From: Macrostomum lignano
Lineage: Eukaryota
Reading direction: 5' to 3'
Assembly (NCBI GenBank): GCA_002269645.1
Contig: NIVC01000593.1
Location: forward strand, 457,047-521,046
DNA length: 64,000 nt
Positions 28,991 to 42,106 of this stretch are shown one piece after another. How positions within the stretch are numbered: position 1 is the first letter of the stretch; each line of letters opens with the position of its first letter. The position numbers and the translations under genes were made by a program. The notes below the pieces were generated by a model. It was not told where the DNA came from. It saw only the letters and a list, made by a program, of their open reading frames with translations, and did no database searches.

Positions 28991-29161
28991 CAAAACCTGG
29001 TGATCCTATCCGAGTGGTCCTGCAACGACACCAGCTCCAGCCAAATTCGTCGGTCCCTCCGACGCGGAGAGAGTGTTCGCTACCTGCTGCCAGACAGCGT
29101 CATTGACTACGTGTACAGGCACCGGCTGTACGGCTGCAGGGCAGACTACTGGCATGGGTGA
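28991..29161 (+). CDS. NMNAT: NMNAT exon 5 (end of catalytic domain; stop overlaps a splice donor)
   Basis: aacgtccAG|CAA; NDTSSSQIRRSLRRGESVRYLLPDSVIDYVYRHRLY is the NMNAT C-terminal motif. Five exons total 873 nt (290 aa) if TGA 29159-29161 is used; CAT GG|GTGAGG is also a phase-2 donor. Confidence 0.92.
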   Translation, partial: QNLVILSEWSCNDTSSSQIRRSLRRGESVRYLLPDSVIDYVYRHRLYGCRADYWHG

Positions 29162-29207
29162 GGCGCTGAGGCCGTTTTGAGATGGAGAGAAACTTCATAG
29201 GACCGTG

Positions 29208-29655
29208 CTAGGCTGATAGACTAGGGAAGTGACAGACTGATAGACTAGGGAAGTGACAGACTGATAGACTAGGGAAGTGACAGACCGATAGACTAGGGAA
29301 GTGACAGACTGATCGACTAGGGAAGTGACAGACTGATAGACTAGGGAAGTGACAGACTGATATACTAGGGAAGTGACAGACTGATAGATTAGGGAAGTGA
29401 CAGACTGATAGACTAGGGAAGTGACAGACTGATAGACTAGGGAAGTGACAGACCGATAGACTAGGGAAGTGACAGACTGATAGATTAGGGAAGTGACAGA
29501 CTGATAGATTAGGGAAGTGACAGACTGATAGACTAGGGAAGTGACAGACTGATAGACTAGGGAAGTGACAGACTGATAGACTAGGGAAGTGACAGACTGA
29601 TAGATTAGGGAAGTGACAGACTGATAGACTAGGGAAGTGACAGACCGATAGACCA
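29208..29655. repeat. 24-bp minisatellite (GATAGACTAGGGAAGTGACAGACT)
   Basis: About 18 copies starting 50 bp after the NMNAT exon 5 donor/stop. Confidence 0.97.
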
Positions 29656-30164
29656 GTGAAGAGACAGACCAAAAAAGGTTATTTCTTTTGCCAAAAAGCA
29701 GCAGAAAGTGTTAGTTGAGAAGTTTGGCTTGGCCAATGAGCAGTTGTCATGAATGCTCTAGAGAAACTAAGTAATATAGAAAGTGTGAGAGAGGAGAAGT
29801 AATGGATAATGTTTAGCTTAGCCTTGAGCCAGGGAAATGAAGTTATGATCTAGAGACGCCTAGGCAATTTTGGATTAGTAGAGATGATACTCGTATATGC
29901 TACTAACATTACAATCTGCATATTGCAAGCAGAACTTAATCAGCGCGCGTTTGCGAAGATGTAATGCATGTAGCTTAAAGTCTACAGTCTAATATGGCCT
30001 CGGGGTGGATCTACAGACTTTCATATTTTTGTATGTGATGAAGGATGAAGCTGGAATGGGGCTTGTCTTGAGAGTTTGTCCAAAGTTCTACTTTGGAACT
30101 TGTATACAAATTTCTTTCTTTTTAATCCGTGAAATTCTTTAAAGTCTGCTTGGTTTTCCTAAAT

Positions 30165-31020
30165 AAAAAAAATCCCCTTGGTTTTCCTAGAATGTCCTAG
30201 GTTTTCCTAGAATGTCCTAGGTTTTCCTAGAATCTCCTTGATTTCCTAGAATCCCCTTGGTTTTCCTGGAATCTCCTTGGTTTTCCTGGAATCTCCTTGG
30301 TTTTCCTGGAATCTCCTTGGTTTTCCTGGAATCTCCTTGGTTTTCCTGGAATCTCCTTGGTTTTCCTGGAATCCCCTTGGTTTTCCTAGAATGTCCTAGG
30401 TTTTCCTAGAATCTCCTTGATTTCCTAGAATCCCCTTGGTTTTCCTGGAATCTCCTTGGTTTTCCTGGAATCCCCTTGGTTTTCCTGGAATCTCCTTGGT
30501 TTTCCTGGAATCTCCTTGGTTTTCCTGGAATCTCCTTGGTTTTCCTGGAATCCCCTTGGTTTTCCTGGAATCTCCTTGGTTTTCCTGGAATCTCCTTGGT
30601 TTTCCTGGAATCTCCTTGGTTTTCCTGGAATCTCCTTGGTTTTCCTGGAATCTCCTTGGTTTTCCTGGAATCCCCTTGGTTTTCCTAGAATGTCCTAGGT
30701 TTTCCTAGAATCTCCTTGATTTCCTAGAATCCCCTTGGTTTTCCTGGAATCCCCTTGGTTTTCCTGGAATCCCCTTGGTTTTCCTGGAATCTCCTTGGTT
30801 TTCCTGGAATCTCCTTGGTTTTCCTGGAATCTCCTTGGTTTTCCTGGAATCCCCTTGGTTTTCCTGGAATCTCCTTGGTATTCCTGGAATCTCCTTGGTT
30901 TTCCTGGAATATTCTTGATTTCATAAAATCTTGGTTTCCTAGAATCTCCTTGGTTTCCTAGAATCCCCTTGATTTTCCTGGAATCCCCTTGATTTTCCTG
31001 GAATCCCCTTGGTTTTCCTA
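30165..31020. repeat. 20-bp minisatellite (CCTTGGTTTTCCTGGAATCT)
   Basis: About 40 copies. Confidence 0.95.
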
Positions 31021-31457
31021 GAATTCTTAGACTTCATAAAATCTCCCCGATTTTTCTAAAATATGGATTTTTTACGATAATATTTCCTAAAATATCTTTG
31101 GATTCTCATTTAGTTGTTTTAAATCTCTCTAGGGGGTTCTTAGAATCTTTCTAGAGTTTTTAAAAACTTTCCAAATAGTTAGAATGTCTCCAAATTGTTA
31201 GAATCTCAATGGATTTCCTAGAATTTTCATGGTTTTTTTACATTTCCTGGAATCTCCATGCCATAAAATAATTTATCTATAGGTCATAGCATCGTTTTAG
31301 ATTATTTAGCATCTGTCTAAGGTATCTCTTAAAAACGCCTTGATTTCTAAGAAACCCTTCTACAAAATTTCTTAGAAAGCCTGAGAAATTCCTTAAAAAA
31401 ATTACTTTTGCAAGTATCTTAGCGAGCTCCGGAACCCCTAAATTCAACAAATCCCAG

Positions 31458-31800
31458 ACAGTCGTCTGTCTCATCTGATGACGCCGCCGAGGCTGCTGTC
31501 TCGAGTTCAGCAGCTGCAGCAGCAGTTCAGCGGTGCAGCCGCGGCTGCCAGACCCGCATGACCGGCTCGGCGATGCCGGCCGCCCGCATCGGAAAGGAGT
31601 GCCGCGCCTGCGGCGCCCGTTCAACACGGCACGTCTTCTTGTCGTCGGCAGCGGTCGACGATCAACGCGGCGACGCGCCCGACTGTCTGCCTCAGCAGCA
31701 GCAGCATGGTGACAGCCGCCATGATCGTCATCGCCAGCAATCGCTCCAGCAGGATGCTGCTAGTGTTGCGGCATTGCCAGCGTTGTCTGGGCCTGTCCGG
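31458..31800 (+). CDS. orphan GC-rich coding exon (NMNAT C-terminal extension or 5' exon of ASPP)
   Basis: Acceptor aatcccAG|A at 31457, open frame QSSVSSDD...KECRACGAR...SGPVR, perfect phase-0 donor CGG|GTAAGT at 31800/31801; GC-rich third positions; in-frame ATG at 31558. No family motif recognised. Confidence 0.6.
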
Positions 31801-31894
31801 GTAAGTTGGCTGTGTTGTTGATAAATTCATAGCTAAGCTCTTTTTGAGGGCTGGCTGGGAAAATAAAATGCAAATTTCATTTGGGTGATAAGGA

Positions 31895-40752: not shown

Positions 40753-41134
40753 TTGGCAATGACCTGTCAGACTTGTTGTTTTTTTCGAAAAACTTGACGC
40801 CCCAACTCTTGAAAAAGTTCTTGCTTGCTCCTGCCTCCCTAGCAATTAGCAGTCGGCCTGTGTGTGTGTCTTGTCAGCTAATGAACTGCTTGGCTGGTTG
40901 GGGTAGCAACACACAAAGACTATGCGGCTGCTTACATAATTGCATCAGCACTGAGGGTGGGATTGGGTGAGAGGTAGAGTACCCATGTTTTAGTTAGTCA
41001 CCAACAGCTTTCTCTGCTGATTCTGTCTGGCAGGGTTCAGAAATCTGAGACTTCCCCTGTCAACTTTGGAAGCAGAAGTTTGAGCAGCCCTAACTGACAC
41101 GCCACTTCGGTGCGTGGCCACATTAATTTGAAAT

Positions 41135-41300
41135 GAGGCACAGACTGTACATGCCTGGCGATTAGAAAGTCAGGGTCGCTGTACACCTTGTGTGAGCGCG
41201 TGCCCGCGTGCAGGATTGGCGCACCTGTGTGCTCAGGGGTCTGCGAAATGTGCAGAGTTGCCCTCAGCGCTGGTTCTGGGACAAGTTCGCCGAAGGCGTT
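41135..41300 (+). mobile_element. dispersed repeat (SINE body fragment, opposite orientation)
   Basis: CGATTAGAAAGTCAGGGTCGCTGTACACCTTGTGTGAGCG is the reverse complement of the core at 2165 and 6660. Confidence 0.7.
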
Positions 41301-41364
41301 GCACCAGGGTGCCCGCAGTCCTGTGAATATTTGTTTATTATTCAATTGTGAAAATTAAGAATAA

Positions 41365-41550
41365 ACAAATCAGTCAGTCAGCGAATCAATCTATCAACTG
41401 ATCAAGTAGTTAATTAGTCAATCAATCGATCAACCAATCAGTTAATCGATCAATCAATCCATCCATCAATCAGTCCATCCATCCATCAATCACCAACCAA
41501 TCAATCAATCACCAATCAATCAATCAATCAATCAATCAATCAATCAGTCA
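41365..41550. repeat. (ATCA)n degenerate microsatellite
   Basis: Ends about 20 bp before the acceptor at 41571. Confidence 0.9.
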
Positions 41551-41571
41551 ACAAATCGCACCGCATTTCAG

Positions 41572-41643
41572 CAGCCGTCAGACGCCAGGCCGAACGCCTG
41601 CAGCTGCTGTAGCGGTGGCGCTCACAGCCAGCAGCGATCATAA
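41572..41643 (+). CDS. candidate terminal coding exon (QPSDARPNACSCCSGGAHSQQRS*) for the chain ending at 31800
   Basis: Acceptor gcatttcAG at 41571 right after an (ATCA)n tract; the phase-0 frame has strongly G/C third positions and stops at TAA 41641-41643. Confidence 0.4.
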   Translation, partial: QPSDARPNACSCCSGGAHSQQRS

Positions 41644-41696
41644 GCAACACTCGAACTAAAATACAAATCAACAGGCAGCAACAAGAATTCAGCGCG

Positions 41697-42106
41697 ATGA
41701 GCGACGAGGCGCAGCAGCAGCAGCTGAGCATCGCCGAACTGCGCGACATTGCCGCCCGCCAGCAGGCGCACATCGACGAGCAGCTGCACACGCTGCGCCA
41801 ACGCGAGGCCCAGATGACCGAGCTGGCCGGCTGGGCGGCGGCCGCCGCCGCTGCCGCTGTCAGCAGCTCCGGCGGCGGCTCCGGCGGAGATCCTCGACAG
41901 CGCCGTCGGCATCTTCAACAGTTGGCTGCCAGCGTGGACGCCCAAGCCGAACGGCTGCGTCGTCAGCGGAGCATCCGGCAGCAGCTGGCGCACTATCGGC
42001 ACGCCAACGCCCAGCTGGGCCGCGAACTGGCGGCTGCCAGGGCCGAGTGCCAGGCCCGGCAGGAGGAGATGGCGGCTCTGGCTGCCAAATTGGATGCTAT
42101 GCACAG
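41697..42106 (+). CDS. ASPP: ASPP family (apoptosis-stimulating of p53 / PP1 regulator), coiled-coil exon
   Basis: LSIAELRDIAARQQAHIDEQ resembles the ASPP1/2 LTLxELxxMAxRQQ coiled-coil start; phase-2 donor CAC AG|GTGAGG at 42106. The start could be upstream if spliced via acceptors at 41612 or 41678. Confidence 0.8.

Follow-up and report, generated by a model that had tools for sequence, protein, structure and literature searches.

We analysed a stretch of 64,000 nt from the flatworm Macrostomum lignano (the window), which constitutes the last 64 kb of scaffold NIVC01000593.1 in assembly Mlig_3_7 (scaffold coordinate = window coordinate + 457046) and which carries an NMNAT gene followed on the same strand by an ASPP gene. 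The NMNAT gene was found to consist of seven coding exons, and the best explanation of the locus is two ordinary, separately annotated genes, to which we assign a probability of about 0.85. The TGA at 29159-29161, with which the catalytic core of NMNAT seems to close, is mere read-through into a phase-2 intron with a GTGAG donor and not the true stop. In the mature NMNAT mRNA, the donor at 29157^29158 (carets mark splice junctions throughout) would be joined to exon 6 and then to exon 7, which would supply the true stop codon, TGA 32721-32723. Onward splicing of NMNAT is real and already in the public annotation, as part of an ordinary gene model.

The window was matched to its scaffold without a single mismatch over 26,829 nt (window 15895-42723, NIVC01000593.1 472941-499769). 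Within this region, GenBank protein PAA80218.1 (BOX15_Mlig000847g3; P0121 in our numbering) is identical to the translation of exons 1-5, then 31458-31800, then 32694-32723. Its gene spans positions 10001-16829 of our record of the NIVC01000593.1 locus (L002), that is, window 25895-32723. Across the exon 5/6 and exon 6/7 junctions, the protein reads ...RHRLYGCRADYWHG^QSSVSSDD...LSGPVR^HRSHRESKS, with YGCRADYWHG as the end of the core. The likely initiator ATG lies at 25931, giving a rebuilt first exon of 25931-26114, and the GenBank coding sequence (CDS) carries a 5'-partial flag, the frame staying open beyond this Met in the upstream direction. With the annotated exon-2 donor, the CDS from 25931 up to 31800 measures 1212 nt. 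The complete product is 413 aa long: a core of about 290 aa and a tail of 123 aa.

The exon-5 frame ends TGG CAT GGG TGA, in which the TGA overlaps the donor GG^GTGAGG (exon end 29157, phase 2). The first-pass annotation of this DNA had placed the apparent NMNAT stop inside a consensus donor and had pointed out the same TGA pattern at the end of ASPP exon 1 (CAC AG^GTGAGG); both observations held. The pattern is generic: read-through of any GTGAG or GTAAG donor in phase 2 yields NN^G TGA or NN^G TAA. Phase-2 introns thus normally show a stop codon of this kind within a GTGAG donor, and here it correctly predicts onward splicing: the proposed splice from 29157 to 31458 is present in the annotation of PAA80218.1, in PAA72173.1, a second GenBank protein, and in P0002, an older, independent UniProt model from the ML2 assembly. 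Exon 6, called an orphan exon in the first pass, is preceded by cccAG, and of its six frames only the one in which NMNAT continues is open, up to the phase-0 donor CGG^GTAAGT, so that the 1212 nt counted in the first pass were reproduced. The step overlooked there was exon 7, located 894 nt downstream of exon 6 behind the acceptor ttctattccAG^CAT. An NMNAT stop 53 nt before ASPP, in an operon-like arrangement, had been suggested instead. As both annotated copies of the gene join 31800 to 32694 and stop at 32723, there is no 53-nt gap and no evidence of a fusion; the NMNAT CDS stops 8,973 nt upstream of the ASPP start.

The second genomic copy (L001), located on NIVC01001106.1, showed 92-98% identity to the window over the aligned blocks and encodes PAA72173.1 (BOX15_Mlig027319g1; P0001). 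It has the same seven NMNAT exons, down to the stop-overlapping donor and the terminal exon; structurally, PAA72173.1 does not differ from PAA80218.1, which represents this very locus (no mismatches, same exon chain). The identity between the two proteins was 98% over the tail query, with PAA72173.1 ending in ...SHSESKS. P0002 is frameshifted by assembly errors, yet it runs through exon 6 and ends in ...TSESKS. All three tail-bearing proteins thus end in ...ESKS, and none runs on into the exon starting at 41572 or into ASPP. The adjacency of the two genes, which the first pass proposed to check in other haplotype copies, was recovered: in L001, ASPP is the next annotated gene at the equivalent place and forms a separate CDS.

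The annotation of Mlig_3_7 was based on RNA-seq, combining StringTie/TACO with a de novo transcriptome, and its gene boundaries were cut using spliced-leader (SL) and poly(A) reads (Wudarski et al. 2017, PMC5730564). The annotated NMNAT junctions should therefore be read-supported. Searches of the M. lignano papers found no mention of Mlig000847, Mlig027319, or NMNAT. An exact-sequence look-up in the protein collection found no entry for the 413-, 424-, 290-, and 639-aa models, and the ASPP exon-1 open reading frame (ORF) had no record either. The cluster numbers (000847 and 027319) were considered as a guide to transcript length and not used as evidence, the numbering rule being absent from the paper.

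Several points weigh against two simple, separate genes with the exon chain described above. The NMNAT junctions rest on the annotation pipeline, and GenBank gives one isoform per gene. No canonical poly(A) hexamer (AATAAA/ATTAAA) marks a 3' end of NMNAT within 1.2 kb after the stop at 32723. A GTGAGA occurs at 32785, 62 nt past that stop, and exon 7 could hence be an internal exon of 91 nt; about 0.2 GTRAG-type sites would be expected by chance in that stretch, given 2.0 such sites per kb in the window. The open frame of exon 6 is not beyond chance for such G+C-rich DNA: in this segment of 66% G+C, mononucleotide shuffles preserved it in 6.7% of cases and dinucleotide shuffles in 22%, and third-position G+C in exon 6 gave no signal for the open frame. 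The case for the tail being a coding sequence under selection is weak. Finally, the tag Mlig000847g3 implies a transcript cluster of at least three genes.

To look for selection on the tail, we also compared how far exons and introns have diverged between the two copies. Exons 6-7 differ at 2 of 373 nt, both differences being non-synonymous, and exons 1-5 at 3 of 869 nt, while unique intron sequence differs at about 1.2%; these differences are too few to inform the test, which was discarded.

The core of the NMNAT product matched PF01467 above the curated cut-off (E = 5e-11), and residues 23-297 of PAA80218.1 matched human NMNAT1 chains (E = 4.9e-60). The exon 5/6 junction comes five residues after the similarity to human NMNAT1 stops (residue 297). 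The N-terminal motif GxxxPx(T/H)xxH is present, as is SSSQIRR in place of the C-terminal ISSTxxR, and both align with the invariant columns. An AlphaFold model was confident for the core and gave a pLDDT of 25-41 for the tail (residues 302-425), which is accordingly predicted to be disordered. The 123-aa tail is rich in Ala (22), Ser (19), Arg (14), and Gln (12), holds 6 His and 5 Cys, among them those of CSRGC and CRAC, and had no Pfam match. Searches of 5.8 billion proteins found no homologue of the tail outside M. lignano; the only tail-bearing proteins returned were PAA72173.1 and P0002, PAA80218.1 being the other member of the 90% cluster of PAA72173.1. Because its stop lies in the last known exon, the NMNAT mRNA should escape nonsense-mediated decay. 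Drosophila and mollusc NMNAT isoforms carry different tails at this very point, and on that analogy the M. lignano tail would most likely govern localisation or interactions with partners and leave catalysis unaffected.

Around the 5' half of the gene, the annotated transcript carries at its extreme 5' end a tiny upstream ORF (ATG CCA AGC TGA, 25896-25907), which precedes the main ATG by 35 nt. The NMNAT models of the two copies begin 3 nt apart (25895 and 25898). Exon 2 has two same-phase donors 33 nt apart, at 26875 (CAG^GTGGCA) and 26908 (CAG^GTTGGA); the annotation takes the distal one, and use of the proximal one would drop 11 aa from a variable loop. Intron 1 contains SINE-core-like sequence (...ttgtccttgagcaagacgctaaactctgcattgcttcagttcacccagctgtaaaaagggtgcc..., 26190-26315) directly before a (CTGT)n array.

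Among the alternatives, the one that we regard as a real if doubtful possibility is compatible with the seven-exon gene. Transcripts that retain intron 5 or end within it would use TGA 29159-29161 and encode a tail-less NMNAT of 290 aa. Such a product would amount to a full NMNAT and be normal in length (human NMNAT1 has 279 aa), the M. lignano NMNAT paralogues stop 11-16 residues past LY, and alternative tails are widespread in protostome NMNATs, with isoforms RA and RB of Drosophila as a precedent; the weak coding signature of the tail points the same way. On the other hand, no AATAAA or ATTAAA occurs within 1 kb after 29161, the first, and the single AATAAA of intron 5, being located at 30162. 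An mRNA that retained intron 5 and kept the downstream junctions would carry a premature stop, and the 290-aa product is absent from the protein collection.

The remaining alternatives link NMNAT to ASPP. M. lignano has a 35-nt SL and operons (PMC8629364); multi-gene precursors make up about 7% of its transcriptional units, whose breaks tend to fall in repeats (PMC5730564, PMC8629364). A single precursor might start from the NMNAT promoter; the NMNAT mRNA would be cleaved and polyadenylated in the spacer, and SL trans-splicing at 41572 would free that of ASPP. NMNAT and ASPP are indeed adjacent and on the same strand, with no intervening opposite-strand gene in the gene lists of L001 and L002 and no annotated gene in the spacer of either copy. 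The TTTCAG^C at 41566-41571 fits the published SL acceptor motif [T/C]TNCAG (PMC8629364), its use as a site being a prediction from the motif; about 205 nt ahead of this acceptor there is an AATAAA (41360); and the missing hexamer near the NMNAT stop, the share of multi-gene units in this species with its breaks in repeats, and the tag Mlig000847g3 all agree with a shared precursor. The spacing, by contrast, is far from that of known operons, which are defined in M. lignano by a repeat-subtracted intergenic distance of <1000 bp, with a mode of about 100 bp (Ustyantsev & Berezikov 2021, PMC8629364). The spacer measures 8.8 kb, and about 3.4 kb remain after tandem-repeat subtraction, a figure that still includes the NMNAT 3' untranslated region (3'UTR) and other repeats, the true value being somewhat smaller. 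The NMNAT prefix also differs between the copies: Mlig000847g3 in the window is replaced by Mlig027319g1 in L001, consistent with a stand-alone transcript, and the paralogous NMNAT at a third locus (Mlig017161g1, L003) has no ASPP neighbour. We thus consider co-transcription over this distance unlikely. The locus resembles the SL operons of M. lignano in its same-strand neighbours and in the TTTCAG acceptor upstream of the downstream gene, and is unlike them in its spacing (PMC8629364).

An equally unlikely variant is an operon inflated to about 9 kb by tandem arrays, in which occasional cis-splicing from exon 6 or 7 to 41572 would yield a bicistronic mRNA. The first pass had joined exon 6 to 41572 to obtain a 427-aa NMNAT. 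Its arithmetic stood (TAA 41641-41643, 53 nt to the ATG at 41697), and the join itself is unsupported, the annotation going from 31800 to 32694. That some transcripts are nevertheless cis-spliced to 41572 from exon 6, or from exon 7 via GTGAGA 32785, giving the 427-aa NMNAT with the ASPP ATG 53 nt further on, is very improbable. The acceptor at 41571 is a good one, and upon polymerase read-through the donor at 31801 could pair with it. Both annotated copies, however, use the near acceptor 32693, whose TTCCAG is equally good (TTCCAG^C likewise fits [T/C]TNCAG) and which lies 894 nt away versus 9.8 kb. PAA72173.1 and PAA80218.1 end in ...GPVRHRSH(S/R)ESKS and P0002 in ...TSESKS; none ends in ...GPVRQPSDARPN....

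Still harder to credit is a fusion protein that runs in frame from NMNAT into ASPP (about 1050-1090 aa) by way of the acceptor at 41613 or 41679; we give it next to no weight. Both joins stay open into ASPP exon 1, as the first pass had stated, but both acceptors are poor: ...gctgtAG^C is not CAG and has no pyrimidine tract, ...aacaggcAG^C is purine-rich, and neither fits [T/C]TNCAG. No protein in the database links NMNAT or its tail to ASPP, and the two are annotated separately in both copies. A protein search combining the tail with the ASPP N-terminus returned only PAA72173.1 and P0002, the low-complexity ASPP part matching nothing. The additional SL acceptor suggested in the first pass at 41675 does not fit [T/C]TNCAG either. 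Overall, the fusion and the 53-nt operon are unsupported, and two separately annotated genes remain our preferred reading.

The next annotated same-strand gene after NMNAT is ASPP, with a CDS start at L002 25803 (window 41697) and a length of 639 aa. Our own three-exon model (41697-48423) likewise gave 639 aa; other GT-AG combinations giving the same length were tried and yielded implausible models only. The C-terminus matched the Pfam families Ank_2, Ank, and SH3_1 above their cut-offs, four ankyrin repeats plus SH3 being the family unit. Chains of ASPP2 (6ghm, 1ycs) and iASPP (2vge) aligned as one stretch at residues 5-186 (E = 1e-46 and 3e-41). Just before the ankyrin repeats, RSVTFDPLTLLLD forms a candidate RVxF-type PP1-docking motif. 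It aligns with the human ASPP2 sequence RVKFNPLALLLD. No M. lignano ASPP entry came back when the ASPP C-terminus was used as a query. Giant ankyrin proteins dominated the exhaustive representative search.

In L001, ASPP exon 1 has a 1-bp deletion in the GCCGCCCGCC run (L001 27539 region, about window 41761). Because of this deletion, the annotated start is shifted to an internal Met, giving 597 aa instead of 639 aa; the deletion could be a PacBio assembly error or the sign of a damaged copy. The ASPP leader would begin at 41572, most simply through an SL trans-splice or 5'UTR acceptor of its own, not an acceptor for NMNAT. A short interspersed repeat (41136-41273) was observed just upstream of the leader, with 76-87% identity to 2171-2240 and 6595-6722 on the opposite strand.

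Table 1. Coordinates of the NMNAT and ASPP features in the window (carets mark splice junctions).
Feature	Position	Strand	Description
NMNAT exon 1	25895-26114	+	Annotated 5'-partial CDS from 25895; donor AAG^GTCAGT, phase 1
NMNAT exon 2	26675-26908	+	Annotated donor 26908; tblastn of PAA72173.1 and gene model
NMNAT exon 3	26983-27164	+	tblastn of PAA72173.1 and gene model
NMNAT exon 4	27571-27672	+	tblastn of PAA72173.1 and gene model
NMNAT exon 5	28991-29157	+	End of catalytic core; phase-2 donor GG^GTGAGG
NMNAT intron 5	29158-31457	+	Mostly tandem arrays: 24-mer 29213-29669, 20-mer 30171-31024
NMNAT exon 6	31458-31800	+	114 aa of low-complexity tail; donor CGG^GTAAGT, phase 0
NMNAT exon 7, coding part	32694-32723	+	HRSHRESKS, then TGA 32721-32723
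NMNAT 3'UTR and spacer to ASPP	32724-41571		8,848 nt, of which 5,441 nt are tandem arrays
Tandem arrays of the spacer	32796-33823, 34587-36009, 36556-37343, 37903-38669, 39528-40751, 41418-41551
TTTCAG acceptor and ASPP leader	41566-41696	+	Acceptor 41566-41571, leader of 125 nt 41572-41696; matches SL acceptor motif (PMC8629364)
ASPP coding exon 1	41697-42106	+	Coiled-coil-like, Gln/Ala-rich; donor CAC AG^GTGAGG, phase 2, read-through TGA
ASPP exon 2	44466-45400	+	Pro-rich and acidic region, then RSVTFDPLTLLLD
ASPP exon 3	47849-48423	+	Ankyrin repeats and SH3; stop TAG 48421-48423

Nearly all introns and spacers in 1-64000 hold long tandem arrays with a unit of 15-35 nt (48 rows in the Tandem Repeats Finder output). 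Examples are 7113-10482, 19071-20252, 28129-28868, 34587-35996, 42116-44382, and 54178-64000. The last 9.8 kb are a 23-mer satellite of about 430 copies that reaches the scaffold end and is probably the reason why the assembly stops there. In the NMNAT-ASPP spacer, no ORF had a Pfam match above threshold, the sole listed match being Tho2 (E = 0.088, below cut-off). The SL sequence (CGGTCTCTTACTGCGAAGACTCAATTTATTGCATG) does not occur in the window, and Rfam and tRNA scans of the window found nothing. A tRNA-like piece was seen on the minus strand at 36080-36165, where GGAATCGAACC is the reverse complement of a T-arm; it looks like a SINE or a tRNA pseudogene, and neither ARAGORN nor Rfam made a call on it. 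On the other side of NMNAT, an annotated gene of 777 aa lies divergently on the minus strand (12205-14022 and 22745-23251). A large exon of this gene encodes a transmembrane-rich protein containing stretches of polyQ and polyH, and some 2.6 kb separate the end of its first exon from the start of NMNAT.

Beyond the annotation, the significance of these results is slight. The case does show that one should look for a good acceptor close by before turning to those far away. If the two genes did form one unit, an NAD+-synthesis enzyme would be transcriptionally coupled to a p53/PP1 regulator in a stem-cell-rich flatworm, and NMNAT-ASPP would be an operon that survived massive repeat insertion, with a curious pairing of the NAD+ and p53 pathways.

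The tail of the M. lignano NMNAT can be compared with two groups of tailed NMNATs. In Drosophila, the nuclear and cytoplasmic isoforms encoded by Nmnat RA and RB have different C-terminal exons (Ruan et al. 2015, PMC4674693). The M. lignano gene shares with them a common core followed by a C-terminal tail from downstream exons, and the fly tails set subcellular localisation (PMC4674693). The two systems differ in that two isoforms have been demonstrated in Drosophila, whereas one is documented in M. lignano. Furthermore, the nuclear tail of Drosophila has a KKQK signal, whereas the M. lignano tail has no recognisable motif, and the tails share no sequence similarity.

The second group comprises the long isoforms of molluscs, annelids, and nemerteans (e.g., Mytilus X1, Liolophura, and Lineus), which likewise carry a Ser-rich, low-complexity tail, of 80-170 aa in their case, soon after the conserved LYG. 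Mytilus isoforms X1, X2, and X3 and the oyster NMNAT isoforms diverge 4-9 residues after LYG. The M. lignano tail, encoded by exons downstream of the core and joined a few residues past LYG, begins at a position that matches these divergence points. A long tail ending in CMTDxGxLVRRVxNV...PETCV is common to many molluscs, an annelid, and a nemertean, and the spiralian long tails share this motif and DNKYINHxxPSPN; the M. lignano tail fails to match them. In the lophotrochozoan long isoforms that we collected (P0008, P0014, P0019, P0024, P0034, P0035, P0044, and P0050), the conserved C-terminus takes the form C[ML]TD[IL]GxLV[RK]RVxNVRVxFxPETCV. We know of no described function for the C[ML]TD[IL]GxLV[RK]RV motif at this C-terminus. 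A MAFFT alignment had hinted at homology between the M. lignano tail and the spiralian long tail (PALSGPVRHR versus PDISGLVRRV), which was ruled out by comparing profile scores with those of shuffled sequences: the tail scored 1.6 bits on the spiralian-tail profile versus 1.7 +/- 1.3 bits for its shuffles, 448 of 1000 of which scored as high or higher. The M. lignano tail is positionally like the spiralian tails, but since it scores no better than its shuffles, it does not belong to their conserved family. Drosophila and molluscs are already known to add alternative tails directly behind the NMNAT core. At the site used for these isoform-specific tails, one NMNAT paralogue of M. lignano has a lineage-specific tail of its own.

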